Assembly (NCBI GenBank): GCA_021613535.1
Contig: CP075497.1
Coordinates: forward strand, 1,550,001 to 1,614,000
Direction: 5' to 3'
DNA: 64,000 nt
From: Adineta vaga
Taxonomy: Eukaryota; Animalia; Rotifera
Below, one piece after another: positions 3,498 to 50,007 of the stretch. A program made the translations under genes and the position numbers. The notes beneath the pieces were generated by a model. The model saw only the letters and a list, made by a program, of their open reading frames with translations. It made no database searches and was not told the DNA's origin. Positions within the stretch are counted from its first letter, which is position 1; each line of letters opens with the position of its first letter.

Positions 3498-3844
3498 AAA
3501 AACAGTTTTGTTTTTGAGGATAATTGTAACTATAGTGATAACATTATTCGCATCATATAACTCAACTATATGTAAAGAAAAATAAACATTTAGAATATAT
3601 GTTCAATGTTGAGATATACAGTTTCTGTAGCAGCATTCATTGTAGTCTTGTCCACATATTATAATACTTAGGATTGTCCAAAAGTTCCAAGCCCTATTTT
3701 TCGGGCCAGATTATGCAATTTGGGATAATATCTCGATTAATTTTGCAGTAAGACGTGTGCACAAAAATCAGAGAACGGAACAAAAAGCATTGAGTTTTTC
3801 TATTTTTAACATCGAAAAATAATTTTGAAAAAAAAGGAACAATC

Positions 3845-3917
3845 TGGAGAAGTTGGGCATCGATCCCAATACCTCTCGCATGCTAAGCGAGCGCTCTACC
3901 ATATGAGCTACATCCCC
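3845..3917 (-). tRNA. tRNA-Ala (AGC)
   Basis: Reverse complement GGGGATGTAGCTCATATGGTAGAGCGCTCGCTTAGCATGCGAGAGGTATTGGGATCGATGCCCAACTTCTCCA: anticodon AGC, G3:U70 alanine identity pair, T-run downstream. Confidence 0.95.
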
Positions 3918-5344
3918 ATATTAATTGTCATATCATTGTTTCATCTGACATTTTTCTCGTCAAGAGAAATCAATCATTGAAAAGAGAACATGAGTATTAA
4001 AATATGATTCTTTTTGTTTACTTAGCTACTCATAGACAATTCTTTTTCTAAATTTTTCGATTTAATCAATAGTAAAAATGAAAATTCATTATCCAAAATC
4101 TTTTTTTTAGCGAAAATATCGAATTCGATTCATATAATTATGAACATGAATGCATGATTTTATGGAAAATAATTCTAACGAGTTAGAACTTCTGAACTTT
4201 CTAGTTTAATTTGTTCATACAATAGTTATAATCATCCAATATTTGCTTACTCGATACTTTCGACTGATCAAAGATACATCAAGTCATTGAATATTTATGC
4301 TCTCGTCTATATAGCGTCGTCCTATGAATTCATTGCTGACACTTTAGTGGTATGGTCGAAACCACATGACGAAGCAATAACTATGAAGTATCTCAGTGAA
4401 TGGCGTTTCATATAAGTCACCAAAGAAAACTCTTACGCAGCGCCTACTCTTATCGTACTGCAAATCACCCACACCCTCAATTATATTTAACTTCATCAAT
4501 TTCTTCGATTTTATTAAACAAAACCTAGTGATTAATAATATTCTCGGTCTACTTTATCTGTTCAATTATATTAAAGCTTAACTGTGCATGTACGATTTTC
4601 TCCAGAAGAGGAGATTACGATCTTCTGTTAATAATTTTTATCAAACATAATCAGTTTACGAACTGACTTATATTAAAGATTCCACGACAGACTGATTGGT
4701 TTCAAAATTTTCATGGGATTTTATGGAAGCAGTATGCCAGATGAGAAAAGTTTCGGTATTTTCTTATTCATATCTCACGTGTTCGTGCAGAAAGCAATTC
4801 ATCTTGTCGTTGTAAGTAAGATTCAGTTGTTGATATAAAATATCTGTACTTAGAATTGGAACTAATTAACTCGTACTAGTCTTCGATTTAGTCAAATACG
4901 GAGCTTAATGATGCAGCAACGTCATTTGCACTTATCTATCATTCTGCGAACAAAATCAATTAAACATTATCTTGATTCTTTTCTCATATAAATGTTTTCT
5001 GTCAGATACGATTTTATTGTTTTAACTATTAACAATTAAGTATCTTTCTTGTCTTAAAAAGAATATCTACAGCTCAATTGTTTTTTTTTCTACTTTAAAT
5101 TGAATGTTTTCAATAGGAAAAATTCAGTCGATATTCGATTAATTTAGGACGATTTCTCAAGTAACGAACAAATATAGGTTAGCTGCTTATGGAGTACCAA
5201 AGTCATTTTACAGATATTTCAAAAATATAAATAAAGATCGTTTTTTTCAACATAGCGTTTGAAAAAGATGAAATGATGTAAGATCAAAACAATATTATGC
5301 CGTTTATCCAGAAAATAAAAAGTAATTTAAAAAAGGAAACAGTT

Positions 5345-5417
5345 TGGAGAAGTTGGGCATCGATCCCAATACCTCTCGCATGCTAAGCGAGCGCTCTACC
5401 ATATGAGCTACATCCCC
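5345..5417 (-). tRNA. tRNA-Ala (AGC), identical second copy
   Basis: 73 nt identical to 3845-3917, with similar flanks. Confidence 0.95.
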
Positions 5418-5896
5418 ATGTTAATCGTCACATCACTTACATCATGTGACTTCGATTATGACTAATCGCTTGAAAGAACGAACGTGAATACAATCAACAT
5501 TTAAAAATTCGCATATTTTAAAAAGACTTTGGTTTCCTGAGAATTTCTTAAACAATCATGGAACTTGTTCATTTTAACAATAAGTATAAGAATCTTATTA
5601 CTTTTCTTACTTCATTTCGAATCCAGTCATTTATATATATTTACTTTTATTTTTAAAATCAATTCTTAATACCCGACTGTTCATTGTTCAATAATTATGA
5701 GAAGAATTAATACATTGAATTGAATGTATGCAGTTTATTTCAAAAAGATAAAGTTCAACAAGATGAGATAGAACAAAATCATAGAAAATGTTCAATATTC
5801 CTTTTCAACAAATATCAAATGGATAATATGATTAGAATTTGAATTCGAATGACATCATAAAGAATAATCAGAATAGTTTCTGTTGATGAATATAAA

Positions 5897-6727
5897 TTAT
5901 TCATGAATAGATTGAATAAATTGAATGATTTGGTCAATCATGTAGATTTGTTCATGTTCATTACTAATTGCATGATCAGAATTTTCTAATAAAATAAATT
6001 TGGAATTAGTTCTATTTGCTAATTTAGTCTTGACAAATGTTCCAACTTCGTCTTTAATTTCATCTGGAACATATTCATCTTGTTTAGACCATATCCATAT
6101 ATTTGGAAGATTAATTTTTTCATAAATTTTCTTTACTTGTTCGTCCGATAAATCACTTGAAAATAAATCTTCAATAGAATTGAATTTATTTAATGATAAA
6201 CAACGTTCAATTGTTAATGGTGGATCATGAAGAGATCGTGGTAACCATTCATGAATATTTTCATGATGTTGTATACAATATTCTAATTGATCTTTTGTTG
6301 AAGGAAGAGTTGAAAGATATTGTCGATCACTGACAGGTCCTTGAAGAATAATTCCACGAATAAGATCAGATTGTTTTCCTTGTCGAAAATAATGAACAAT
6401 ATCTTGACAACCAGTTGAATGACCCATGAGAATAATTGATTTCAAATTCTTTCGTTGTTTTATCAAATAATCAATTAAATTTTGAAGATCTTCAATATCA
6501 TTATTAATTGTATGCCAACCAAATTGTAGATTTGATGAACGTAGTAATGGTTGAATCAATGAATACGATAATTGCAAAAGAGATTCATTAAGTCGTGGAA
6601 GATATGAAAGAGATAAAAGACCATCTGTAAGACCACCAAGAAAAATAAAACATTGTGTTGATGATGAATCAGATTCAAATGCAATTAGTTTATATTTTTC
6701 ATCATATACAAACAAATTTCCATACAT
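5897..6727 (-). CDS. DUF1749/UPF0613 alpha/beta-hydrolase (fungal SidJ fusarinine C esterase family), intronless
   Basis: Family motifs FLGGLTDGLL, MGHSTGCQD (GxSxG nucleophile), GIILQGPVSDR, DEYVP, C-terminal DH; uninterrupted 276-aa ORF. Confidence 0.8.
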   Translation of the reverse strand: MYGNLFVYDEKYKLIAFESDSSSTQCFIFLGGLTDGLLSLSYLPRLNESLLQLSYSLIQPLLRSSNLQFGWHTINNDIEDLQNLIDYLIKQRKNLKSIILMGHSTGCQDIVHYFRQGKQSDLIRGIILQGPVSDRQYLSTLPSTKDQLEYCIQHHENIHEWLPRSLHDPPLTIERCLSLNKFNSIEDLFSSDLSDEQVKKIYEKINLPNIWIWSKQDEYVPDEIKDEVGTFVKTKLANRTNSKFILLENSDHAISNEHEQIYMIDQIIQFIQSIHE

Positions 6728-7409
6728 CTACAATATATGAATAAGAATAAGAATAGAAGCAAATAAATCTGTGTGTCAGTCAATTTCCATTGCTTTTTCG
6801 TATGAAAAATCTATTGAATTATTTCGATGTAATCTGATCTGATTTTCTAAAGTATCTACGATGAATAATTCTTCTTTGATTGACAAACAGCTCCCTCTTT
6901 AAGTTCTTCTTATTTTTTGGATCGTGTTCAAACAAAACAAGAAGAGAAGAGGAAAGTTCTCTTTATATTTCTCGTCCGCGTCGTCTTCTTCTAGTCACAT
7001 AAGACTGACTAACCGAATTTTATTTGTTCGTTCTGCTACATACATATATTATTTCTTCAGACTCATTCCTAGGTCACTTAAATTACATTCATTCATTTTT
7101 TTGTCCGTTCGTCTATCTTTCTACTAGTATCAGTAAGTGATAAGAACATTTCGAAAGAATGAAAAGAAAGAAATTGTCCGTTCGAATTAATATTTATTCT
7201 TCGTTCTTTTTACCCAAAAAACAGAGAAAGAACGATTGAAGCTAGATGCAAGACATAAAGGAAAAACGAGTGAGAGTATCAAGTAGAAAGAAACGAGAAC
7301 AATCTGTTTTAGTCATTGAGGGTAGAAAGTCCATTTAATAAAATATTTTTTTTTACATTTTTAAATGAAAAATTTCTTTCTATTTTAGTTTTCTGAAAAA
7401 TTAATTACA

Positions 7410-8309
7410 ATGTCAGGCATTATTAACGCTATTTTTGGTCATCATAAAGATAAAGATGATAAAAAAAATCATCCAACAAATGAAACAACTACAACGGCGA
7501 GTACATCATCAGGTTCATCTGTAGCTCATACAGCTATTAGTGAAGATGTTCGTGTTCAATCTGTTGTATCAAGTGAAACCAATACAAGTGTTAGTGTACA
7601 AAATACAAAAAAGATTTCTGATCTTATGAATAAACTTGGTAAGTTCATTGTATAGAAATGAAGTTTTATTGATTTATTTATGAAAAAAAGGTACAACACA
7701 TAATCAAATTGATGAATATTCGAAGAAACGAACAGCTGAAATTAGTGATGCTGTTTCAGAAGCAATTAATAAAGTTGTTGCTGATACAGCAACGCAACAA
7801 CAAAAATTATTATCGGATGCAAATGAACGTTCACTTTCAATTGAAAATGAATATAAACTTCGTTTACAAGAACGTGTTGTTCAATTGGATAATGAAAAAG
7901 CGATTTTATTAGCTGAATTAGAACATGCATTAAATTCACGTCAAGAAGCGATTTTACTTCAAGCAAGACAACAAATTGATCTTGTACAAGATGCTGCTAA
8001 TCGAGAAAAAATGGCTGTTTTTAAAGAAGCACAAGCCAAAGCTAATCAACAAGTTGATCAAATAACTGAAAAAGTTGCTGAACTTGCAGCTGAAGATGCT
8101 CAACGACGTCTTCAATCAACAACTCAAACAGTAATTTCAAATTTTATTTCGAAATTGAATAATAAAATCTTTCTCTTTGTTCTTAGGTTATTACAACAAA
8201 ATCTGTTGCATCAGGTGACACGCATGTTCAAGGTGCACATGTCACAGCGACATCTACAACAACAACACGAAAATCTTCTGATTCTCATCATTCATCAAGC
8301 AATAATTAA
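7410..8309 (+). CDS. Hydrophilic LEA/CAHS-like protein: disordered termini around a long charged amphipathic helix
   Basis: Exons 7410-7638, 7691-8130 and 8187-8309 join in frame at canonical GT-AG sites. Core THNQIDEYSKKRTAEISDAVSEAINKVVADTATQQQKLLSDANERSLSIENEYKLRLQERVVQLDNEKAILLAELE...; no Cys or Trp. Function inferred from composition only. Confidence 0.7.
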
Positions 8310-11300
8310 CATTCTTCTCATTGTTTAATCAAACTTATTTATGTTAATCTCGCCTACTATTGATTTTGTCTCTACTTACATATTTAATATAGATATGTTC
8401 ATTTGTCTTTTCTTTATTTGTCGAACAAAATTGTATATACGATTTCGTTGAAACACATTTATTGAATTCTAAATATATATATATAATCATGATGATAAAC
8501 ATTTTCTTGTAAATAATTAAAATATTGTTTGAAAAGTTCGACTTGACCGATAAATATTAATGAGAGATGAAAAAAAGAACGAAGTTCTCGTTTATACGTA
8601 AGAAGATTTCAATCAATTAAAAGTTAATTTGGAAATACCTAATGAAATAGATTATATGAAGTATTTATCTTGCAGTTGATTGTAATTATCTCCATGATTC
8701 ATCACGACCGGATGTTTATCTTCTTTTAAATTTCTATGCATGTTATGGATATCTTCTCTTTCCTATCTATTATGATCAGTGAACCATCTTTATCAGTAGA
8801 AGATCTTACAACAATAAAGGATGTTTCATAAGTTTCGAGACTCGAGAAAAAAGCAGCAGTGAATAACAATTTGATCGATAAAAAAAGGAATTTTCCTAGT
8901 AGAAAAGGAGCGCTCAACGGGAAAATGTCTGATCATTAGATTGTTCATACTAAAGACATCACATGTACTTTATTTTCTACGTATAATAATGATTTTGGAA
9001 AGAGTGACAATACACAAGAATATAAAAGCATTTCTTTTCAGTGGAAAGTGTTCCATCGAAATTATCAGTAGAAACGGATCATTTTTCACTGAAGTATTTT
9101 GTTTTCTATAGAAAGATTCATTTTCCCTATAGATCGGAAAGATATCTTAACCATCGATATTACATTCGAATAGAAGTTGTTTTTTGGTATATCAATTTGA
9201 TTATTATATTGAGTGTACTTTTTTGCTTCAAGTAGAAACTTTTCATAACAACAACTCATGAGTTCCCAGAGATCTTTATACGAATTGATGCTTTTAAATC
9301 ACCATTAATTGTTGTAGAAGATGGTTCAATAACAGTCTGATGCTTGGGTGTCGTGTGTCACATCTTGTGGAGAAGTGAAGTTTTTATCATTAAGCGAGAG
9401 ATAAGTTATTTCCCAATAGGTTTCCTTTTAAGATCGAGTTGACATAGCATTTAAGATTACTTTTACAGTGCTTCAAGAGCAAAGGCGATTTCAGAATACA
9501 ATTAAGTACTTATCTCTTATTTTAAAAGGTTCGGCATAACTTACGCAGAGTGCCTTCTTTTGAAGTAAAGTAAAAATCTTATTTATTTTCAACGGATATG
9601 TTATTGCCTTACTCTTATGTGCGTTAGTTAGTAAAATAAATGAAAGGTAAACGAAATAGTCTTTGATATACTCATAATATTGTTATAGATGATTTCGAGA
9701 ATTATTCAAATACTAACAAATCGAAGATATAGTAGAATTACTTGATTTTCTAATAAGTAACAAGTTTTCTTATAAAAACGTATGATTTAGCGTTTTTTTT
9801 TCTTATCGGAAAGAACGTAATGTAGATAAGAAAGAGTAGTTAAAGTACATAAATCTTTGTGATATATTATATCATTGAAATTAGCCAAATAAAAGTTTAA
9901 AAATGTACTCACGAGTCACGTTATTCATACCTGCTCCCTTTTTTTTATAAATAAGAAAAGAATTTTATAAAATCATAGAAATATTTCTGTATGAAACCTG
10001 TTTCCTGAGTTCTAGGTTAGAATAGTAACGCCAGTTTCTATCCGTTATGGTTGTTTCATGATCAATTTATCTTGACAGAAAATATTTGCGATGATAACAT
10101 TAAGTTATTAGAAAAAGAGGCGAAGTTTTCCGGTACTCAAACATTTTTTTGACTGAAAGCAATAAAATAAGGTCATTTTTCTTTTGAAGATTCATGACAT
10201 AAGTTTGATCTCTTTTTTTATTTCGAATATTTTCGTAGATATATATTTCTAAGCATCGTTTTAAAACAAAAGTCTTATAACTATCATTGAAACGTCCTTT
10301 TATAAAAAGATGAACTTAAAAAACCATTAGTTTAATTGAAAGGAAATTGTCTGACATTATAAACAGACTTTTAGTTCTAGTTAGTATTTTAAATGAAAAG
10401 AAAGGAAACTTGTAGATATGCATGAATATTTCTATTCGACGTAGAAAACCTAAACATGACAAATAGAAATTAGGAGAAGGTGACATGAATAAACACTTGA
10501 TATAAAGAAGTATTTGCAATCGATTAGTTTGCAAAAATAAATTTTTTATCGATCAAATTCTATGAGTTAGAAAATATCTCATATGTTATTTATTAATGAC
10601 GAGGTTTTTTTTAGTTCGATATTTATCAATAAATAAAATGTTGTATTTTTAATTCCGATATATATATGATTAGATTTCAATGAAACAAATTGTGAATATC
10701 ACACATGAAAAGAATAGAACATTAATCAATTATTGATGTTTTTTTCTAATTTAACACTTTTTCATTTCTCGAAATTCACAATTGAACTTTTTTCTTTCGA
10801 TCATATTTTCATATTCATTTGATTATAGAAAAAAGAACCATTCGTATAAATTACTTTCGAATATTTCTTTTTGTTAAGAAAAATTCTTTTAGTTTTTCTT
10901 CGAAAAGGTCATAAATGGGTGTAGGTGTAGAACTACATGAGTACATTTCTTATAAAGTAATAATTAAAATGAATGCATTATGACTTACAGAGATTAATCT
11001 AAATTGGTTTTTTTGCTAACTATAGATAATAACATATTAGTTTTCCGATAAGATATTTTCCCTTCCATTGATACGGAAAATAATTCATTTCGAATTTCGC
11101 TTGATTTAAATCGTATTAATAGAATACAAAGTTTGTTTTTTTTTCTTAGCTTTATTTCACTAGATTAACTTTTATATATAAATGAATCGGAAGAGTCATG
11201 ACATTAATACCATTGTTTTTGACTATTGAACAGAAAGATATGTCTTGTGAAAATATTGATAGACTTACTCTTCCATCCATAATAAAGAGGAAAAAACAAA

Positions 11301-31298: not shown

Positions 31299-36509
<5,211 letters not shown>

Positions 36510-36658
36510 CTATAATGAACTTGTGTACACTATTTGATTAAATTTATCCTAAAAAAAAATGGCCTATTTTGTAAGTAGCAGATCAAATCATTCATGTATT
36601 TATTTCCATTTGAAGTGTATTTAGAGAATATATTTTTGTATTATTTTTTATATTGATC

Positions 36659-36840
36659 ATCTTGTATGACGGGAAATTTATCTTCGTCAAGATTTCGAAT
36701 CGAATGAGTCAATCCCATTATGTGGGTTCTTTGTTGTTCCCAAAGAAAACCCATGAAATACATTGAGATGACGATAATCTGATCCCACGTGCGTTGAAAT
36801 GGGAGAAAATCGTCGTCTTATTTATTTTCCTTCCTTCCAA
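36659..36840. promoter_or_regulatory. Copy 1 of a ~185-bp element, 150 bp upstream of the ABCC start codon
   Basis: About 85-90% identical (by-eye alignment), same orientation, to 48401-48587. The regulatory role is inferred from position. Confidence 0.7.
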
Positions 36841-37381
36841 ATGTCACTATGAACTTACAACCATTTTCAAAAAGAACATCGATTCGTTGACATATTCATG
36901 AAACAATAGACTGTTACATCTACAAATACTCAAAAACAACGAGCTCGTAAATATGAAAAATTCTGATGTGTACAAAAGTATTCTAAGCAACTACACGGAG
37001 ACTAATAGTCGTGCCTATGCTTCAAGAGGAGAAAAGTAAAACTTCTTTACTCCAAAAGACGATAAGAATAACTGAAGTCTCGCTTTTTTCCCTTGAAGAA
37101 TTCCCATCCGATGATAATAACGATCAATTGTTTTATTATGGGAAAGTACCATTGGTCACAATAAATTTTCAATATAAATACAAAACCCAGTCTCAAGGAT
37201 TTCTACATTCATTGCTTTCACTTTCAATCCACAAATCGAGTAATAATTAAGTAAGCAGAAAGAATATTGTTCTTATAATTTTATAATCTATAATAATATT
37301 CAACAGTGTGATTAGAATATTTCAAAATCGTGTTTAAAAATGTCAATAACGTTTCTTCATTTCTTTGAATAGATTGTAACT

Positions 37382-37729
37382 ATGAAATTCAGATTTAATA
37401 TTCTTTCAATTTCAACTATCTGCTTATTCATTTTCGGAATGATAATAAAAGAGACAATTGCTGGTGATTGTGATGGAACTCATTGTGGATGTTACAATGA
37501 ATATTGTTGGTCTTATATTAAAGAAAGACACAATTCTGATGGTATATCATGGTGTTATACTCAAAATACTGCTATTAATACAAGACATCAAGAATGGCAA
37601 CCTTGTACAAATAATCATGATTGTTATTCAAATCGACCATGTATTAATTTCATTCGTTCTAAAACAGAGGACGAAGAAAATAAATCTTCCAATGATTGGG
37701 ATTTGTTCCAATGGTTGGACATTATCTAA
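37382..37729 (+). CDS. Secreted Cys-rich small protein (CGC-x4-CWS...WCYT...C-x5-C-x5-C; recalls allergen Tha p 2-like proteins)
   Basis: Signal peptide then GDCDGTHCGCYNEYCWSY...SWCYTQ...PCTNNHDCYSNRPC (8 Cys); intronless ORF. The family name is from recall. Confidence 0.7.
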   Translation: MKFRFNILSISTICLFIFGMIIKETIAGDCDGTHCGCYNEYCWSYIKERHNSDGISWCYTQNTAINTRHQEWQPCTNNHDCYSNRPCINFIRSKTEDEENKSSNDWDLFQWLDII

Positions 37730-37952
37730 CTTTATTTCAATTCCAATCTAATTCATTATCTGTTCGTTTTCTTTTTTACGAAATAAAATTTGTGATCTTT
37801 ATCTCTTGGAAATTACTCAATTACTATGTTAAGATAATATATATTTTTATTGAACGGACTAACATCAATGAATTTAATAAAAAAAACTACAGAATAGATC
37901 TTTTTCTAGAAAAAATCAATTCCAATATATATATAAAATTCTTATCCGACAA

Positions 37953-39680
37953 TCAATTATAAAAATTTCCATGTAATGAAAAAGGAATATGTACAGGTAA
38001 ATACGCTCGGGTTATTTCTTGAAATGTTTTCGCATCTAATAGAAGTATAAATGATTTGTTTGTTTGTTGTTCGAAAATAATTGTTAAAATAATTCCATCA
38101 TCTTCTTCGAGAGATTCAGGTTTAGGAACAAAGATTGGTTCACTCGGAGATGTGCATGGTTCTTTCCATAATCCAGTAACTTGTTGACTTTCAATATCAA
38201 TTTTAACTAATGCATCAAAGAAATAATTAGGTGGACCTCGAACAGCATAGATAAAACGATAAAATTTTCCGGTAAAATTCGAATTAATTCTTGGTAAATC
38301 AATTTGTATTGGAACAAGACTATTTTTATAAGAAATTGGATAAGTTTGTTCATGAGATAATTGCCGAACATTTTCAAATGGTTCTGTACATCGTTTTGTA
38401 TTTAAATTCAGATGAAATCTTCGAATAAAACCTAAACCAGATGGAAAAATATTCTCTCGAAGTTTATTTAAAGATAATTCTTTAACTAAACGATGATCAT
38501 CATATGCACAAATATCAATAATAATCGAATCTTTCATTTGATAAGCATTTATATGATGAAATGTAAAAAATCCTGGACCAGATATTCGTGCAATTTCTTC
38601 GCCATTATCCAAATTTATGATTCGAAAATAAGTTGGTAATGATTCATTCCATTTAAACATATCTGTTAAGACTTTACCAGATAAAAGTGTTCCAAGACTT
38701 TTTTTCAAAGAAAAATGTAAGGGAATTTCTGATAAGATAAGATAATCTTCAGTTATTGATGCACTATGCATATATGATGCACCATGTTCATAGTTATAAC
38801 GAAATGATTTTGTTTGAGATTTTATTGAATTATTGTATTTTTTTCCACGTTCATTCATATTTCTTGTAATGGAAAGAAATCGTCCACCTTCATCGAAATC
38901 AGCTTCATTATTATTAAAATCTATTCAAAAGAATAAAACTTCGTTTTTATGTTAAGTTAAACTTTCGATATTGATTGAAACTTACCAGTCGTCGATGATA
39001 AATTATTTTGTTCTTCATTATCATAAATGAAAATGACATCTAACCATTGTCCATTCGAACGTGTCATTCTTGTTGCATAACCAACTGTCATCTTTCTCTT
39101 TGAATCATACATAACATGAGCTGTTGTTAATGTTAGAATTTCTGTTTTCAATTCTTCGGCATATGGTAATGTTACTAATGGTCCAACGGTATCTAAGGTA
39201 TTTTCATCGATAATATAACCAGGTATTGTTTCTGTTAATGCCAATAATTCATTATTTACTCGTTGAATCGTCACTCCTGTATCATCCGTGAATAATTGTC
39301 CGTTCATTGCGGAAAAAATTAATTGAAATCGACCAAAAATAGTTTTACATGGATCAGAAGCGAAATTGTCGAGTAGTAAGATGACCATGTTTTAAAGATT
39401 CTTTGTAAGTATGAGATTTAATAAAAGAACTTTGAAAATAAATTGTATTTGATTGTCCATCAATCTTATATTTTTGTATATATGCAAAACCATCGAATGG
39501 ATGATTAACACTTGTTTTCGGATCATTGTTTAATTCAAATTGTCCAGGACCATTTCGATATAAACAACCTTTTAACCATAATGGAAGTTGTTTATCAAAT
39601 GTTAATTTTACTTCTTTATTGTATTCTTCTGTACTATTAAATAAACCGGAATTATTCCATTTTTCGTTATTCGTATCCAT
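37953..39680 (-). CDS. Carotenoid cleavage oxygenase (RPE65/BCO/CCD family), about 553 aa; +1 frameshift near 39363
   Basis: WLKGCLYRNGPG, HPFDG, DPCKTIF; four Fe-ligand His present (TTAH, SYMH, FTFHHINAY, SLHG); SEPIFVPKPESLEEDDG. Intron 38985-38921. CAA TTT C GCT TCT GAT has one extra base. Confidence 0.9.
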
Positions 39681-40084
39681 GTGAAAAGAATTTTATCTCG
39701 TCTGTGTAATACTTTATGAGTCGGATAAAAGTAGAATATCTAGAATAGAAATCGTCTTTTCAAAACTATCAAGAGAGTAGTTAGTGACAAATTTTCTCTT
39801 TGCTTCTACCTGTTCGCGCCATTCCTCAGTTTTCTGTATACAAACTAGTCAATGTTTTATCTGCATCTTGAGAATCTTCTTATATAAAGACTTTTTTTAT
39901 TCTGTCCGGGAGAAAATTCATTGCGTGGGAAAAAGGATGGGAGGGAATTCTCTGAGTAATATTTAGGCTCATGTACTATGAATAAACTATGGACTTTAAT
40001 CTGATTGGTTTAGAATTGATCTAGTTACTCATAGGAAACGATTGAGTTATTATTCGAGAAAATTTATTTAAAAAGAAAAGCATA

Positions 40085-43000
40085 TTATATAAAATTCATT
40101 TGTTTTAATCGATCAACAATAAAATGAACAGATGGATTTTCTAAAAGTGTGTCATGTGTTCCATCGATATTTTCAATATTCAATTGAGATAATAAAGAAT
40201 TCCAAATTTGATGTTTGGTTTCATTTGAAGTAAATTGATTATTTTCTTTTAAAGTAAACAAAATTGATTTCTTGATTTGAATTGATTCATTGGATTCTTT
40301 TGCTAAATCATATGTATAAGATTCTTTTGCAATAATTTGATTTTTAATAACTTCGAAAATTTTTTGTTCAAAATTATCATTCTTTAATTTTGAATATCGT
40401 GTTTTGAGAAGAAATAAAATTTGTTTTGTTAAATAATCAAGTTTTTCATTTCGTTCTTCAATTGATAAATTCAATAATTCTTGAATAAATTCATCCGGAT
40501 TTGTTTCTTTATTTAAATAAGAAAAAATCATTCCAATTGTTTTAATTAATCCAAATTCTTTTGATAAAATATTTTGATTTTGAATTGGTATTGGAGGATC
40601 GATTAATACTAGAGATTGAACTGTTGTTTGATGTTTCGTAAACAATTGTCGAGCCATTTCATAAGCAACAATTCCACCAAATGAATAACCAAGTAGATAA
40701 TATGGTCCAGTTGGTTGAATTCGTTTCATTTGAAAAATATATTGTTCAGCAATTGTTTCAATAGATTGAAAAAATCTTTCATTCGATTCATAACCACTTG
40801 CACGAAATGCATAGATTGATGGACATTGAATTCCATAAATATCTTTTAAACGAATTGTTAATTGAATAAATGTTTGAGAAAGACCAATTATATCATGAAT
40901 ACAAAATAAGGAATATTTTGAATCAGATTTATGAAATAAATTTACAAGTGAAGTACCAGAAGAATTCATTTCAAATTGTTTAGTTTCATTATTTAATAAA
41001 GTATTTTCATTGATATAATTGATTTGATTATTTGATAAATGTTGAGTATTATTTGTTGGAATTTGTTTATCAATGAATTTATTTTGAATAAATAAAGCAA
41101 GATCATTGATTGACATACCTTGTAATAAATCTACAAGTGGAATAATGATAAACATTTCTTTAATTAACCAACTTCGAAGTTCAACAGCAACTAATGAATC
41201 CATTCCTTGTTGTACAAGTGATTTATTAATATCAATTCGATTAATATCTAATGAACCAAATAATTTGGAAATAACTAAACGAATTTTATTTGTTATTGTA
41301 TGAATATCGAAATTTAATTCTTGATTTTCATTTGAGGAATTGCCTGAATCTTGATTTTCATTTTTATGTTTTAAAAATTCATTACCAAATTGAATAAGTT
41401 TTGATGATAAATTCGTTTGAAGTAATTTTTTCCAATTAACAACAAACATTATTGGATTAAAAAGATTTTTTTGTTCAATTGTTTGTTTTTGTAAATATTC
41501 CAATTGTTCAATCATTTTAAAAACATAATTCGATGGCATTAAATGTATACCTTGATCTTCCATTAATTGAATTGTTGATTGAGCATTCTGATGAAGATAA
41601 CCCGCACCTGATATAGCTGGTAAACCAATTGAAATAGCTGGAAGATTTAAATAATTCAATCTCCAATAAGCAAGATTATCAAGAAAATTATTTCCTGCAT
41701 TATAATTTGATTGTCCAATATCAGGAATATGATTTCGAATCGATGAAAACATAATAAAGAAATGTATTGGACATGTTAATGTTACTGTTGCTTGATGAAG
41801 ATTCCATGCACCACGAATTTTTGGTTTCATAACTTCCGATAAAAGATCATTTGTCATATTTTTTAATAAACTATCATGTAAAACCATTGCACTATGAATA
41901 ATTCCACGAATTGGATAAAGTTTATTTTCATTAATCGTATGAAAAACTGATAAAATTTGTTGAAGATCTGTTACATCCGCTTGCATTATTTCAATCCATG
42001 CATTATTTTCCTCTGCAATTTCTTTTAATTGAATCCAATTTTGATATTGTGAACTCTTTTGATCTAATTGATTCAAATTTCTTCTTGATAATAAAACAAT
42101 TCGTTTCACTCCACGTTCTTTTATCATCCATTTGGATATATCAATACCAATACCACCTAATCCTCCACTAATCACAATAGTTCCATGACAACAAACTTCA
42201 TCCGGAAATAAATTTTCTAAAGAAACAAAAAACAAAATTTCGATTGAAGAAAAAATAACACACTTCAAAATAAACCTTTTCGTTTGTTTTGTATGTATTT
42301 TTCTGTTCGATTAGTTTCAATCGTTAATTTATCATTTGATTCAGCTATTTTAATAACAAATTTTCCGCAATGTGTTCCTTGAGAATATGTTGAAAAAGCT
42401 TGTTGAATTTGTGAAGCTTGAAATTCTTTGATTGGTCGAATTGGTTTTAATTGATTAGTTGAACAGTAATTTGAAATCTGCGTTAATAAATTTTGTATTG
42501 TTGATGGAGAAGATTTTTGAAGAGAAATCATATCGATGATATGACAAGTCGAATTTGTTCGTAAAGAAAATAAGGATAATTGAGAATTGGAATAAACATC
42601 ACGTTTATTAAGTTCAATAAAATGACCAAATGGAGCAAGTAATTCTAATGATTCATTTCGAAATGTTCCTAAAAGTGAATTGATAATAATATCAACAATA
42701 CCATTAGGTGCAATTTCACGTATTTTTGGTATAAATGATAAATCTCTACTATTAAAAACATGTTTTAATTGATATTTTTCTTTCAAAAATTCTCGTTTTT
42801 CTTCTGTGCCTGCCGTTGCAATAATATTCGCACCAATCATTTGTGCATATTGAATAAATGCTAAACCAACTCCACTTGTTGCCGTATGAATTAATATTGT
42901 TTGTTCTTTTTTCAATTGAATTCGATTCTCTAAACAATATAAAACAGGTAAATACGTTGGTAATGTTGTTAATTCTTCCATTGTTAAATTTACTGGCGCT

Positions 43001-46000
43001 TGATGAACATCATTTTCATTTAAAATAACATGAGATTTAAATACACTTTCATTTGTAATTGAACCAAAAATTCGTTCATTTAAATTTAATTTCACTTGTG
43101 AACCTTTTCGAATGATAATTCCCGAAAAATCAGCACCCATAATTTCATCCCTATCATACTGATCTTCTTTACCACGAATATATGGATGTAAACCCTGAAC
43201 TTTTAACATATCACGAAAATTCATACTAACACAATGAATACGAATTTCAATTTCAGTTGGTAAAAGAGTTTTTGAATTATTTGTTTGATGAATCCATTGA
43301 AGATCGGATATATGACGAGATTTGGGAATTTCTAATTGAAATCGATGTTGATCAATATCTTCTTTAGGAAGGATTTCTTTTTGTTCAAGTGAATTCCAAT
43401 TATCATATTTTGATGATTCAATAAATGAATATTCAGGAATAAATTTTTCAATCTTATTATTATAATAACGTAGAAGAATTTCTTCATTTGGAGAAGAATT
43501 TGTAATTAAATTGAATTCTTCGATTAATATTTCAAGAAAATCAGTTGATAAATGAGAAAATTGTAAATCAATTAATTTCATTCGATTAGTTTTATATTCA
43601 TTTATAATCGATCTTGCAAAACCAATAATTGGTGATTGAATTAAATTAAAATTTTCTTGCGAATATTTTTTATTATTCATTGGTTGAGAATTTTCTGTAA
43701 GAACAAATATATTTGGATAATTATCAAATTGAAGTTGATAAATTGTTTGTAAAATATGCATTAATGTTCCACATCCGATTTGTTCTTGTGATTGAAAAAC
43801 TAAATCATTTGTTGAATTAAAATCTGGTAAATCAATTGACCAATTAAATAAAATATTTAATACGGAATTTTTCGAAAGAGATTTTAATTGAATTATATTT
43901 TGAATAGTTGAAATATCATTAATAAGAATTTGTTCGAATGAATTGTTATCGATTGAAATTTTCATGGGTGTTAAATAAATAAGTGTAATATTTTCATTTT
44001 TAACTTCATGTTTTAGTAAAAGATCAGCTATTTGTTTTCCAAGATGAAATTTTTGATCGGAAAAAATTATCCAAAATTCTTCGATAGTTTTGCTTTGAGA
44101 AATTTCATTTGAAGGTAAATCCGTTAATTTCCATGATTGATAGGCACAAAAGTGTTCAATTAAATCATTTACTGGTACAATTTTCTTGGGATTATTATTA
44201 AATATCGAGCTACTTTCTCCAATTTTGCCAATAATTGATTTTGAATGACTTTTATTTGGAAAATTTTGTAATTTAAATCCACGAAATGTCATAATTGATG
44301 ATAATAACGATGAATTTTGACTAAATAAAAGAATATCTGTAGTAAAAGTTGTGTCTGATGTAATTCCTTTGATCGATTTGTGTAATGATTGTGCAACATA
44401 GAATTTTGTATTGATTTGTTCAAGAATTGAAACAAAACTTGTTTTTCTATTAAATAAAATAATTTCATCGATTGAAATTGGTACAAATGTATCGGAAAAA
44501 TATCCGGGAAGAAATGAAAATATTCCATGAAAACAACCATCTAATAATGCTGGATGACAAATGTATTGATCTTTCTTGAAATTTTCTTCTTGAAAAAGTT
44601 TCGATGGAATTCTCATTTCGGATAATGCTTCATATTCATATCGATATAAATTTTTCAATGATTGAAATTGTGGACCATAGGAAATTCCATTAGCTGAAGA
44701 ATATTTATAGAAACTTGCAACATCATTTTCATTATTAATTAGAATTTGTGATTTGTTATTCTTTGATGGTAATAAACGAGTTAAAATTGATTCATAATCA
44801 TATTTTGAATTGATTAATAATGTATCAAATTTTAAATTAATTGAACCACGACAATTTAATGTCCATTCTTTTGATGAATATTTATGTAAAATATCTTCAT
44901 CATTAAATGCTGTTATGATATCATTTCCACTAATACCAGAAAGACGTATTGAATCATTGGGAGATTTTCGACGACTATAAATATAAAATTCTTTGAATGG
45001 CATGATGATAACTGTTTCTAAATGAATTGTTTCATCAGGATTTAAATAAAGTCCATGAAGAAATTGAATATTTTGTAAAGTAATTGATTGTTGATCGGAT
45101 GAAATATTTTGTAAAAGTTGATTGAGAGCAGAAATAATAAGTTCAATAAAAGCAGCAGCAGGAAATAAAATTTCACCATGAACTTGATGATCATTTAGAT
45201 AAGATAGATCATTGGAATTATTATTTAAAGTTAAAAGATTTTTCCATGTAGGTGTTTGTCTTTCATTATGCCATAAACGATAACCAAGTAATGGATGATG
45301 TTGTTTTTTAATTGCTCGTCGAGAAAAAACTGAATCTTTTGTTTCATACCAATAGATTTGATGATTAAATGAATAATTCGGTAATGTATCAAGAAACGAA
45401 TCGATTGTTTTGAATATTGAATTTGTTTTTAAGGTTAAAAGAAGTTGATAATTAATAGAAGAATTTAAAAATGTCTTCCAATGATTTAAATGTGAATTTA
45501 ACGAACATAATGATAATAACATTGTTTGTTGTTCATTTTGTTTTCGTTTAAGTGAAGGAACAACTAATGGAGTTTGATTTAATTCTCGTGCACATTCAGG
45601 AATAGCTGCTGAAAGAACAGGATGTGGAGAGATTTCAAGAAATATTGGTGTCATATTAGAATCTTTGCTATCATTCAATATTGTTTGTATTCCTTGATTA
45701 AATAAAACAGCATTTCGAACATTTTTCCACCAATATTCTCCATCAAAATTCAAATGATCAGCACGTGTTCCAGTTACTGTTGAATAAAGAATTGCATTTG
45801 AACATCGTTCATCAAATTCATTCGGTTTTCCGTCACCTTTAATATGAGAAAGTGATTGAAGAAGTTCTTCACGAATATTAAATCGTTCCATTTGTTTTGT
45901 ATGAAATGCATTTTGAATTTTTAACCATGTTTTAAAAACTGTTGGTTGTGTTGCTGAAAGATGATCATAAATAGTTTTCAATGCATTTTCATCTCCACCT

Positions 46001-48298
46001 AATGTTACTGATTTTGGACTATTAATTGCAGCTATTTGAACTTGTTCTTTTACATCAAATATTATGTCATTTGCATCAGCTTCACTAAGAAATAATGCAA
46101 GCATTCGGCCACCTTTATTTGTATTATAATTTTGTACACGAGAACGATGATAAATGATTTCAACAGCTTCTCGTAATGTTAAACGACCAGCAACATATGC
46201 AGCTGCTATTTCACCAACTGAATGTCCAATAATTGTTGTCGGATAAATTCCCCATGATAACCATAGACTTGTTAATGCTATTTGTATTGCTAAAATGGAT
46301 GGTTGAGCAATATTTGTGAAATGTATTTGTGAATCTTCTTCTTTTTTTGGTTCAATTAATTCTTTTAAAATTGAAAATGAATTATTTGAAACAGATAAAA
46401 ATTCTGCATCTAATTTTTCAATCCAATGACGAAAAACAGGTTCATTTGAATACAATTCACGTCCCATTGCCCACCATTGTGGACCTTGACCACTATAGAC
46501 AAAACAAATATTGAAATTCAATTGATTTTCCATTGAAATTTTTGATTGAGAAAGGAGAACACCTGGAATATTGATTTCATCTGATAAATATGATTTTAAT
46601 TGATTTTCAAATTGTTTCAAATTTGAAAATATAAATGATAATTGATGTGAAAAATTTGTTGTTCGTTTTAATAAAATTTTTTCTGATAAAGAAGTAAGAA
46701 AGAATTGTTCAGATGTTTCAAGAAAGTCTTTTGGAATTGTTAAAATCCATTTTGAAAAATTTTCCATTTGATTTTTTAATGATTGAGAACATTTAGCTAA
46801 ATAATTATAGAAAAGTTTTTCTTTTGAAAAATTATTCAATATTTTCTTACCAGAAAATGTTAATACAAAAGTTTGTTTGAATGTTTTCATTTGATTTTTA
46901 ATTGATTTTAACGAACAAATTGAAGTATTGTTTTCATAATATTCATTTAAATGATTTTCTGACCATTCTGTTACAATAGCATGAGCAGTATTTCCACCAA
47001 TACCAAAATTATTAATTCCAACAGTTATTAATTGTTCAGGAAAGTTAACAAGATGATTAACAATATGTAAATTATATTTTTCTGCATGAATTTTTGGATT
47101 TAAACGAGTAAAATTCATATTGGGTGTTATCATTCGATATTTCATACATAATGCAATTTTAATTAATGATGCAATGCCTGCAGTACCTTCTGTATGACCA
47201 ATAACACTTTTAACCGAACCAATTAATAAGGGTGAATTGTACGGAGAACGATTAAAAAAATGTCCGATTGTATTTGCTTCAATTGGATCACCAACTTGTG
47301 TTCCTGTTCCATGACCTTCGATATAAAATATTTGATTTAAATCAATCTTATTTCGTGTATAGATTTCTTTGAGAAGAAGATTTTGTCCATAGCTTGATGG
47401 AACATTATAACTTAGTTTGCCTTCATTACCAATGTGAAACCATCACATCACGAATAACACAATAGATTTTATCTTGATCACGAATTGCATCACTTAACCT
47501 TTTCAAAAGAATTAAACCAACTCCTTCAGCTAAAATTTAAAACAAAATACATTGAGAAATGAGAAATAAGTTCGATTTACCTTTAGCATAACCATTTGCA
47601 TCATCACTATAAGCTCGTGATCTTCCATCTGGTGAAACAGCACCAGTAATTAATGAAACGAAGAAACTTTCCGGAGTATAATTCAAATTACTTGCACCAG
47701 CTACAGCAAAATCTACTTCGCCATTTCGTAAACTTTGAATAGCAAGATGAGTAGCTTGAAGTGAAGATGAACAAGCTGTATCCATCGTAAGATTAGGTCC
47801 ATGTAAATCAAAATGATAAGAAATTCGAGCAGAAGCATTATATAAACCTAAATTAGGTCCTAAGAGATTGGATTGTTCTTCAACTTTTGAACGTTGAAAT
47901 GTTGTCGAATGATCAGTAGTAAATTGTCCAATATAAACAGCTGTTCGACTTCCTTTAATTTGATCAACAGGATAATTAGCATCTTCAAGTAAATGAACGA
48001 ATTTTTCAAGTAAAATTCGATGACATGGATCCATTGACATAGCTTCACCATCTGTTATACCAAAAAATGCTGGATCAAAATTGTGAAGTTGATCATTGTT
48101 AAGAAAATAACCATTTCGTATTAATGATTTCTTTGAATTGTAATATGGAGCAAATGAATCCACATTGAAACGTTCTTCAGGAATCGTACTACCTACATCA
48201 ATACTATTCTTAAGAACTTTCCAAAATGATTCAGGTGAATCGATTCCACCAGCAAACGTACATGAAATACCAACCATTGCAATTGGTTCAATAGTCAT
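40085..48298 (-). CDS. Single-module type I polyketide synthase KS-AT-DH-ER-KR-ACP-TE, about 2,680 aa; frameshift in KS near 47431
   Basis: Exons 48298-47581, 47529-46851, 46796-42276, 42216-40085. [24 protein letters not shown]; AT GQGPQW, GHSVGE, NAFH; [13 protein letters not shown] and HPALLDG; [12 protein letters not shown]; [22 protein letters not shown]; ACP GMDSL; TE GYSFGG and GTH. In exon 2, VSH-W-stop replaces the expected VSHDGNEGK. Confidence 0.93.
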
Positions 48299-48400
48299 TT
48301 TTATATTTGATGAATTTTGAATAGTTATTGTATTTATAAATTCCTATTCGGTTGAGAATAGATATTCTATTGAAAGAGAACTCGAGTATTTATAGTAATT

Positions 48401-48587
48401 ATCTTGTACAAAGGGAAATTTATTTCGGTCAAAGATTTCGAATCGAATAAGTCAATCCCATTATCTGGGTCGTTTCTTATTCCCAAAGAAAACCCATGAA
48501 ACACATTGGGATGACGATAATCTGATCCTACGTGCGTTGAAATGGGAGAAAATTGTTGCCTTATTTCTTTTCTTTCCTTCCTTCCAA
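48401..48587. promoter_or_regulatory. Copy 2 of the ~185-bp element, about 100 bp upstream of the PKS start codon
   Basis: Shares long runs such as GATTTCGAATCGAAT, GTCAATCCCATTAT, TTCCCAAAGAAAACCCATGAAA, GATGACGATAATCTGATCC and ACGTGCGTTGAAATGGGAGAAAAT with 36659-36840. Confidence 0.7.
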
Positions 48588-49174
48588 GTGCTTTATCTAA
48601 CCGACTTCTCAACTCTTATTGAATCAAACCCTTTTCTTTTCGACTTACTTTACATTTTAAACAGATGAAAGATTTAGTTAATTCTCTCGAAATAATTGAA
48701 GAATATTGATAGATTATATCCGTTACAAAGCATGCATTTTCCATTCGTCTTTCGGCAACTTAAATGATTAATCAATTAAAATGTATTTCAAATAGTTTTA
48801 TGAATTTAATATACTGAAATTTTTCCTTTCTTCATTAGACAAAGATATTCTTAGACCAATTTTCCCATAAAATCAATCATTTTCGATAACACTTGAATAT
48901 TTTTTGAAAAAGTTTCATGTGAAATGATAAACTAAAAATTCTTTCTCATTTTATGGTTTTCGCTTATCTATCCTCATACAAATAGAATCATAATCTGAAG
49001 GGTATCTGTTTTTGAAATCATTAGTAAAATTAAGAAATGTATTTATTTCAAAGATTTGGGAATTACAGGTTTCGAAAATATTATATTAAAAAGAAAATGA
49101 TAATTATTGAGAACTATTTTGATCGACTTCAGAAAAGCAGTTGAAATAGATTTTTAAAATGCTTAAAACTTATA

Positions 49175-49431
49175 CTAATTGTAGTGACATAATGAAAAAT
49201 GACCGTCGTGACAAAATCCTTCTGCAAATCCAAGCCGACGGCAGCATTCCAAAAGAGGAGCATCACCATAACCTGTACGGTATTTTCGGCAGCGATCTTG
49301 ATAATATTGCGTCGAGATCATTTCAATAGCTATTAAATATAACAACAAATAAATCATCTATGATTACGACCTGTTGACTACAATGACTTACCCATAGTTA
49401 ATATAAGAACAAGAAGAAGTAAACGATCTAT
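49175..49431 (-). pseudogene. Diapausin-like peptide copy A; start codon reads ATA and one Cys is Tyr
   Basis: Exon 1 ATA GAT CGT TTA CTT... mirrors ATG CAT CGT TTA CTT of copy B. Mature QYYQDRCRKYRTGYGDAPLLECCRRLGFAEGFCHDGHFSLCHYN has 5 Cys. Confidence 0.6.
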
Positions 49432-49527
49432 GATGATATTGTAGCTTTGTATAATGATACGAAAGTTAGGTGAAGTGAGAATGAAATGCAATCAACAATA
49501 TATATCTAAAAGTTTTCTAGAAACATG

Positions 49528-49539: not shown

Positions 49540-49759
49540 TGAGTTATAAGTTTGTTTTTATCAAAATGGAAGTGTCTCATCGAGATAGCATATTGTACAT
49601 AATACCAGATACAGTATTATCTTCTTTTTCCCATCCTCATCTTACAACACGATAAAGATATATCTTTATATCTTGAGAGTATGGATGAGATGTTGCTGAT
49701 TGGATTTCACTCTCACTTCACTTAACTCTCGTATCATTATACAAAACTACAATATCATC

Positions 49760-50007
49760 ATGCATCGTTTACTTCTTTTTCTTCTTGTATTAACTATGGG
49801 TAAGTCATAGTGTTCAACAAAACATTATTATAGATGATTTATGTGTTGTTATATTTAATAGCTGTTGGAATAATTATGGCACAAAATTATGAACCTGCTT
49901 GCAATACTCCTTGTAGAACTGGTGGTCATGTTCCAACATGCTGCCGAAGCCATGGATACAGAGGAGGATGGTGTAACGGTGCTCGCTTTGCAGTCTGTTA
50001 CAACTAG
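49760..50007 (+). CDS. Diapausin-like antifungal peptide precursor, copy B (absent from the ORF track)
   Basis: Exons 49760-49799 and 49862-50007: MHRLLLFLLVLTMAVGIIMA|QNYEPACNTPCRTGGHVPTCCRSHGYRGGWCNGARFAVCYN. Pattern C-x3-C-x8-CC-RSHG...C-x7-C matches beetle diapausin (C-x3-C...CCRAHG...C...CN). Confidence 0.8.

Follow-up and report, generated by a model that had tools for sequence, protein, structure and literature searches.

The 64,000-nucleotide stretch of Adineta vaga DNA analysed here (assembly GCA_021613535.1, contig CP075497.1, positions 1,550,001 to 1,614,000 of the forward strand; hereafter the window, in whose coordinates positions are given) carries a biosynthetic gene cluster in which a non-coding block of 204 nucleotides (nt) stands in two copies, one upstream of a type I polyketide synthase (PKS) gene and the other upstream of the gene for an ABCC4-like exporter. 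Read on the minus strand in the direction of the genes, the order is a Cys-rich peptide gene, copy B of the block, the PKS gene, a carotenoid-cleavage dioxygenase (CCD) gene, copy A of the block, and the ABCC4-like pump. The features of the cluster are as follows.

48389..48592, minus strand: copy B of the block, between the end of the Cys-rich peptide gene (whose frame ends near 49185) and the PKS ATG.
48389..48394, minus strand: TATAAA, the final 6 nt of copy B, 96 nt upstream of the PKS ATG; predicted transcription start site near 48362.
40085..48298, minus strand: type I PKS, with Pfam KS, AT, DH, ER, KR, ACP and TE domains; ATG at 48298, stop at 40085.
37933..39734, minus strand: transcript of the CCD gene (RPE65 family), coding sequence from about 39680 to 37953; this gene has no copy of the block.
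About 38921-38985, minus strand: intron of the CCD gene, spliced out in RNA contigs.
37382..37729, plus strand: small Cys-rich peptide gene, divergent from the ABCC gene and kept in a collinear contig (L036).
36647..36850, minus strand: copy A of the block, within the 872 nt of intergenic DNA that separate the divergent ABCC4-like and small Cys-rich peptide genes.
36647..36652, minus strand: TATAAA, the final 6 nt of copy A, 143 nt upstream of the ABCC ATG; predicted transcription start site near 36620.
31299..36509, minus strand: ABCC4 (MRP4)-like exporter with many exons; its 3' limit is approximate (about 31300).

Alignment, a repeat finder and global alignment agree in delimiting copies A and B as direct repeats of 204 nt each, 11.7 kb apart and in the same orientation as the genes behind them. 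Globally aligned, the copies are identical at 174 of 199 aligned bases (87.4%), the differences comprising 18 transitions, 7 transversions and two small indels; the repeat finder resolves them into a 150-nt core at 91% identity and an adjoining 44-nt piece at 80%. An initial annotation of this DNA had described two stretches of about 185 bp, 85-90% identical and similarly oriented, with likeness stopping abruptly on both sides, and this description is upheld: on either side, local alignments between the flanks of A and those of B score no better than alignments of shuffled sequence, so that the borders are abrupt and a longer, older duplication with decayed flanks can be rejected. Microhomology at the borders amounts to a few bases at most and is uninformative, and no junction signature is readable at the copies. 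A genome-wide DNA search of the A. vaga assembly (100.8 Mb in 6 contigs) with the block found exactly two places, copies A and B, and a search with a 26-mer of the block, 3 mismatches allowed, again returned just these. Because there are two places genome-wide and the likeness of the flanks is at the level of shuffled sequence, the block is regarded as a discrete unit of about 204 bp, and the possibility of a high-copy dispersed repeat, for which the genome-wide search had been proposed as a check, is ruled out. The block is unlike the other short repeats of the window, which come from gene duplicates or from two tRNA-Ala genes.

The gene-proximal end of the shared block, by sequence and alignment, is exactly TATAAA in both copies. 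From the end of the block to the ATG there are 91 nt at the PKS gene (copy B) and 138 nt at the ABCC gene (copy A), where about 100 and 150 bp had been given; the proximity stands, and the distances are corrected in part by reading exon 1 of the ABCC gene from the sequence, which places its ATG at 36509 and not at 36462. As TATAAA occurs 1.27 times per kb per strand, a border would fall on this word by chance in about 1% of cases, although the coincidence was noticed only after looking, and TATA-like words are common in AT-rich DNA, so that as a core-promoter element the word is suggestive only. The block is also rich in TGGG/CCCA, as the initial annotation had noted together with GGGAAATT and (C/T)ACGTG: there are 6 such sites per 204 nt against a window mean of 0.38, and all top-ranked TGGG/CCCA windows of the 64 kb fall on the two copies. 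Five of the sites are common to A and B, while the GTGGGA of copy A is lost in copy B, which has a new CCCA 20 nt away. An ACGTG core is kept in both copies (CACGTG in A, TACGTG in B), as are GGGAAATT and GATTGACT, the latter followed by CA or TA; these motifs presumably resemble Rel, bHLH and bZIP sites. In the other intergenic DNA of the cluster (1,754 nt), TGGGA/TCCCA, a pentamer picked partly after seeing the data, occurs 6 times against 0.85 expected (P = 2.6e-4), two of the occurrences being upstream of the CCD gene, and the originally described TGGG/CCCA occurs 7 times against 2.84 expected (P = 0.026). Position, orientation and anatomy of the block thus fit those of a putative proximal promoter.

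Nothing in the sequence marks the block as a mobile element, a coding relic or a known RNA. A miniature inverted-repeat transposable element (MITE), a short interspersed element (SINE) and a solo long terminal repeat (LTR) were each considered and rejected, since the block has just two copies and shows neither terminal inverted repeats nor a target-site duplication, a poly-A tail or a tRNA-like head. An Rfam search of the block at E up to 1 gave no match, and a tRNA search gave none. The initial statement that there are no terminal inverted repeats, poly-A tail or open reading frame needs qualification in its last part, as open frames of 50-89 codons exist on both strands of the block; none of them has a start codon, and they have no Pfam relative and none by six-frame search of the A. 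vaga genome. Compared with that of copy B, the frame in copy A is broken by a 1-nt indel and a stop codon, and where it is open the two translations disagree at about ten residues, so that a coding relic was rejected. The DNA from copy B to the PKS ATG was likewise searched for remains of an N-terminal extension of the synthase, and nothing stood out above chance. Diverged versions of the block were not found by nhmmer upstream of 10 PKS and 8 ABCC paralogues in the A. vaga genome, and a scan of metagenome contigs with a 21-mer of the block yielded no related copy, only three exact matches in unrelated contigs of 52-54% GC, attributable to chance. Clusters of the shared motifs were also sought in other PKS promoters; the dense ones, in contigs L007, L013 and L035, look due to higher local G+C or to a palindrome, and the 8-9-mers shared among PKS promoters correspond to the chance expectation.

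The reading that we prefer, tentatively, is that the proximal promoter of the pump gene was recently copied within the locus and set before the PKS gene, bringing both genes under shared control. We infer the promoter activity, the co-regulation, the direction of copying and the copying mechanism alike. The block would be a candidate proximal promoter module, consisting of a TATA box and about 200 bp of upstream factor-binding sites (a homotypic TGGGA/TCCCA cluster, the ACGTG core, the GGGAAATT site and a TGACTCA-type site), and would probably have been resident at the ABCC gene first. Local copying without a transposon, for example by templated repair or ectopic conversion at a DNA break, would then have placed a copy before the PKS gene, long after the PKS-CCD-ABCC cluster had formed, and synthase and pump would thereafter answer to the same transcription factors, being jointly off in ordinary culture. 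A promoter duplication had been proposed from the outset, and what can be retained of that proposal is a two-copy, non-mobile, non-coding block that ends at TATAAA about 100-140 nt before each ATG. It is doubtful whether one may go so far as to say that the complete proximal promoter of the exporter was copied before the PKS gene of an old cluster, possibly through the repair of desiccation breaks, to yield a two-gene synthase-plus-pump regulon and hence co-regulation of an animal cluster by promoter copying.

The age of the cluster relative to the block can be judged from the environmental contig L036 (33% G+C), in which the order is the Cys-rich peptide gene (matching 49447-49033), 741 nt, the end of the CCD gene, the small peptide gene and ABCC exon 1. 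The CCD remnant corresponds to the last 93 nt of the CCD region (38027-37935) and is 70% identical to it; the small peptide gene (37791-37378) is 70% identical and ABCC exon 1 is 84% identical to the window. Compared over L036:1-3500 and window positions 36430-49447, the contig lacks the PKS gene and all of the CCD gene bar those 93 nt, while the peptide genes and the pump remain. It looks as if a lineage-specific deletion of about 11 kb removed the PKS gene and most of the CCD gene in the lineage of L036, and on this comparison the gene order of A. vaga is ancestral relative to L036. Non-coding identity between A. vaga and L036 is 60-70%, versus 87% between copies A and B, which makes the cluster far older than the event that copied the block, or than the latest homogenisation of its copies.

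The PKS family is itself old and many-copied in bdelloids: A. vaga has at least 10 paralogues, relatives occur in Adineta, Rotaria and Didymodactylos, and among named matches outside the rotifers the nearest are bacterial, at about 28-31% identity. The PKS-CCD pair recurs in A. steineri (L025, L026) and in the environmental contigs L024, L032, L033 and L034, the PKS of L032 being 82% identical in the first KS exon, and by gene content and order PKS-CCD is a conserved two-gene module of A. vaga, A. steineri and environmental bdelloid-like contigs. These results do not support the suggestion of the initial annotation that the duplication offered a foreign gene a route to a host promoter: the PKS family and the locus predate the duplication, and where upstream DNA is available, the conserved pair is not preceded by the block. 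Because the family and the locus are older than the duplication, any rewiring would be recent and not a step of domestication. Nor is the repeat the strongest evidence that the cluster is functional, as had been claimed; the conserved synteny of PKS and CCD and the collinear L036 are stronger.

Expression was assessed from four sequencing runs (X1 and X2, together with X10 and X13 from two other studies), as assembled contigs, not raw reads, placed on positions 34500-40400. In X1 and X2 the contigs are confined to 37933-39734 and lack a 65-nt intron whose ends read CT..AC on the plus strand, equivalent to GT..AG on the minus strand; the removal of the intron shows that these runs are RNA and that the CCD gene is expressed. 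Four indexed runs, X1 and X2 among them, hold 8% of the sequence words of the PKS stretch, a share that equals the CCD part of the query, so that the PKS gene is taken not to be assembled in them, and no indexed run is recorded as RNA for that stretch. The PKS and ABCC genes are therefore both without a transcript contig in runs in which the intervening CCD gene is spliced and expressed, which, as negative evidence from contigs, fits a shared off-state. It also agrees with the near-silence reported for bdelloid nonribosomal peptide and PKS genes before induction (PMC11258130).

Several observations weigh against a copied promoter. In the four mapped runs no contig covers copy A, the 5' end of the ABCC gene or the small peptide gene, although contigs can neither prove silence nor reveal transcription starts, and since no contig lies on the PKS gene, the ABCC gene or the block, no transcription start is mapped. 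The NCBI model of the synthase (I4U23_027727) has a first exon at about 49266-49199 followed by an intron of about 855 nt (48343-49198) that contains copy B, which would put the block inside the gene; this exon shares DNA, in a different frame, with the last exon of the Cys-rich peptide gene, on which account it is deemed spurious and probably a mis-prediction, and the KS domain starts at the ATG at 48298. The block was not found upstream of the PKS gene in A. steineri, L032, L033, L034 or L035, L032 offering 244 nt only, and L024, with zero nt of sequence upstream of its PKS gene, falls outside this comparison. The motif statistics are partly post hoc, and we estimate that in a gene-dense genome about one in ten tolerated random insertions would fall within about 250 nt upstream of a gene in the right orientation. 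The main rival, unlikely in our judgement but a serious one, is a neutral by-product of DNA repair, in which a patch of about 200 bp was copied from a nearby template with no regulatory effect, and its place before the ATG reflects the shortness of the spacers. Bdelloids suffer many DNA breaks during desiccation, and the sharp borders, the lack of mobile-element features and the presence of two copies only, close together, are what such repair would leave. The 87% identity of the copies lies within the range of the other local duplicates of the window (84-88%), as it would if the block were drifting neutrally; no expression evidence positively links the PKS and ABCC genes, and in other bdelloids the PKS homologues with available upstream DNA carry no block there. 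A neutral patch accounts less readily for a border that falls precisely on a TATA box, with both ATGs at the distance expected of a promoter, for the extreme motif density common to both copies, in which one lost site is balanced by a new one nearby, and for the enrichment of TGGGA/TCCCA in the other intergenic DNA of the cluster.

The copies might also be a shared functional promoter with another history, in which the block belonged to the PKS gene first and a copy of it replaced part of the ABCC promoter, or in which two old homologous promoters were recently homogenised by gene conversion, a process well known in bdelloids. That A and B are most alike in the middle of the block and less so toward either edge agrees with such a history, which is nonetheless improbable: the closest PKS homologues have no block where upstream DNA is available, and the sole cross-species trace lies on the ABCC side, at the collinear position. 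There the 3' half of the block has a weak nhmmer match before the ABCC gene (E = 0.16 in L036 and 0.017 in L037), in which the 11-mer GATTGACTCAT is invariant; the local score of this match is reached by 6 of 500 shuffles, about 1%, and L036 and L037, being 96% identical, are not independent, so that the match hints only weakly that the ABCC copy is older than the PKS copy, a weakness that tells against the preferred direction of copying. Still less probable is a duplicated transcribed unit, such as a small non-coding RNA, a short upstream open reading frame or a 5' non-coding exon. Open frames are present on both strands, copy A folds somewhat better than its mononucleotide shuffles (z = -2.3 to -2.8), and short RNAs drop out of assembled contigs; against this, copy B reaches a z of only -1.1 to -1.4 and is predicted to fold differently from copy A, the frames have no start codon and are broken in copy A, there is no Rfam, tRNA, protein or Pfam match, and no contig lies on the block in the four mapped runs. 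A relic of a mobile element, or long target-site duplications left by insertion of a PKS-CCD cassette, as direct repeats bracketing the PKS-CCD pair might suggest, is very improbable and largely refuted, by the two-copy number and missing mobile-element hallmarks in the one case and in the other by a cluster order that predates the repeat, as seen from the CCD relic beside the ABCC gene in L036 and from the 60-70% versus 87% identity.

The neighbouring genes and their relatives show further features. The PKS open reading frame is 100% identical to the A. vaga protein I4U23_027727 named above. Among solved structures, those of MRP4 are closest to the exporter (E = 5e-55); the ABCC exons and open reading frames were searched singly, and exon-level integrity was checked in part. 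The small plus-strand gene at 37382-37729 encodes a 115-residue Cys-rich peptide with an N-terminus that by eye is hydrophobic and signal-like; it has no significant Pfam family, no RNA contig in the runs mapped to 34500-40400, and about 56% protein identity to its counterpart in L036. Just upstream of copy B, over the coding sequence of the other Cys-rich peptide, an inverted duplication (49298-49501 and 49690-49893) has 204-nt arms that are 84% complementary, which suggests two head-to-head copies of the peptide gene. Elsewhere in the window, two tRNA-Ala(AGC) genes (3844-3918 and 5344-5418) have similar flanks and are 88% identical over 136 nt. At the 5' end of the CCD transcript (39633-39734), two contig forms differ at 6 positions in both X1 and X2 and are probably two alleles, both expressed. 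No exact-sequence match to the products of the open reading frames of the window was found in the cluster collection searched.

Among the relatives, contig L035 (48% G+C) carries at 4711-10726 a 74%-identical PKS gene head-to-head with a pump of the ABCB1 (P-glycoprotein) type, and in A. steineri a long near-perfect palindrome lies directly upstream of the PKS start (L025:9620-9990) and looks like an insertion of foldback or MITE type. A PKS paralogue on chromosome 3 of A. vaga (G000:C3:1565735-1573943; also L008 and L038-L041), whose first KS exon contains two in-frame stops, may be a pseudogene; the ohnologous block on that chromosome was rejected as a counterpart of the cluster, as the paralogue stands alone there, without collinear neighbours.

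The combination of synthase and pump has parallels. In the A. ricciae PKS-NRPS (nonribosomal peptide synthetase) cluster, flanking ABCB1 and MFS pumps are induced with the synthases on fungal attack, and bdelloid nonribosomal peptide and PKS genes are near-silent in controls (Nowell et al. 2024, PMC11258130). As here, the clusters described there place a megasynthase of horizontally acquired type beside ABC exporter genes, but that cluster comprises a PKS-NRPS with ABCB1 and MFS pumps, whereas the present one comprises a KS-AT-DH-ER-KR-ACP-TE PKS with a CCD and an ABCC4-like pump that share a 204-bp upstream block; in the main text of that study, which treats about 40 clusters, the words "promoter" and "upstream" do not occur (PMC11258130). 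A search of the literature on Adineta, PKS and carotenoid returned no work that treats this locus.

In fungi, clusters are co-regulated through a motif repeated in their promoters, as with the AflR sites of the aflatoxin cluster, and the regulator is usually encoded nearby. The resemblance is that the same cis-motifs stand before synthase and transporter, so that one factor could switch both; the difference is that fungal clusters share short motifs in otherwise unrelated promoters, while here a whole 200-bp block with its TATA box was copied, before two genes of the cluster only, and no regulator has been identified. Duplicated cis-regulatory modules or promoters are known to rewire genes and are often carried by transposons. 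Here too a ready-made regulatory block would have been copied to a second gene, but unlike modules moved by transposons the block has no transposon features, is present in two copies, is local (11.7 kb) and stands before the second gene just as it does before the first. Templated patch insertion or ectopic gene conversion at double-strand breaks leaves a short, sharp-edged copy with no target-site duplication, and the block is likewise a short, sharply bounded copy from nearby, though one in which no junction signature can be read. Synthase-plus-pump neighbourhoods with joint induction (PMC11258130) and the copying of regulatory blocks are thus known already; the novelty lies in one particular case, open to test, within a biosynthetic cluster of an animal.

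This locus offers a small and concrete candidate for study of two questions, how the foreign-type genes of bdelloids gain regulation and how biosynthetic clusters of animals are switched on along with their export pumps. If the two copies have no regulatory role, they would be one more repair patch in a rearrangement-prone genome. If transcription of both genes starts behind the blocks and the two are jointly induced, the locus would be a case of co-regulation of an animal cluster arising by simple promoter copying.

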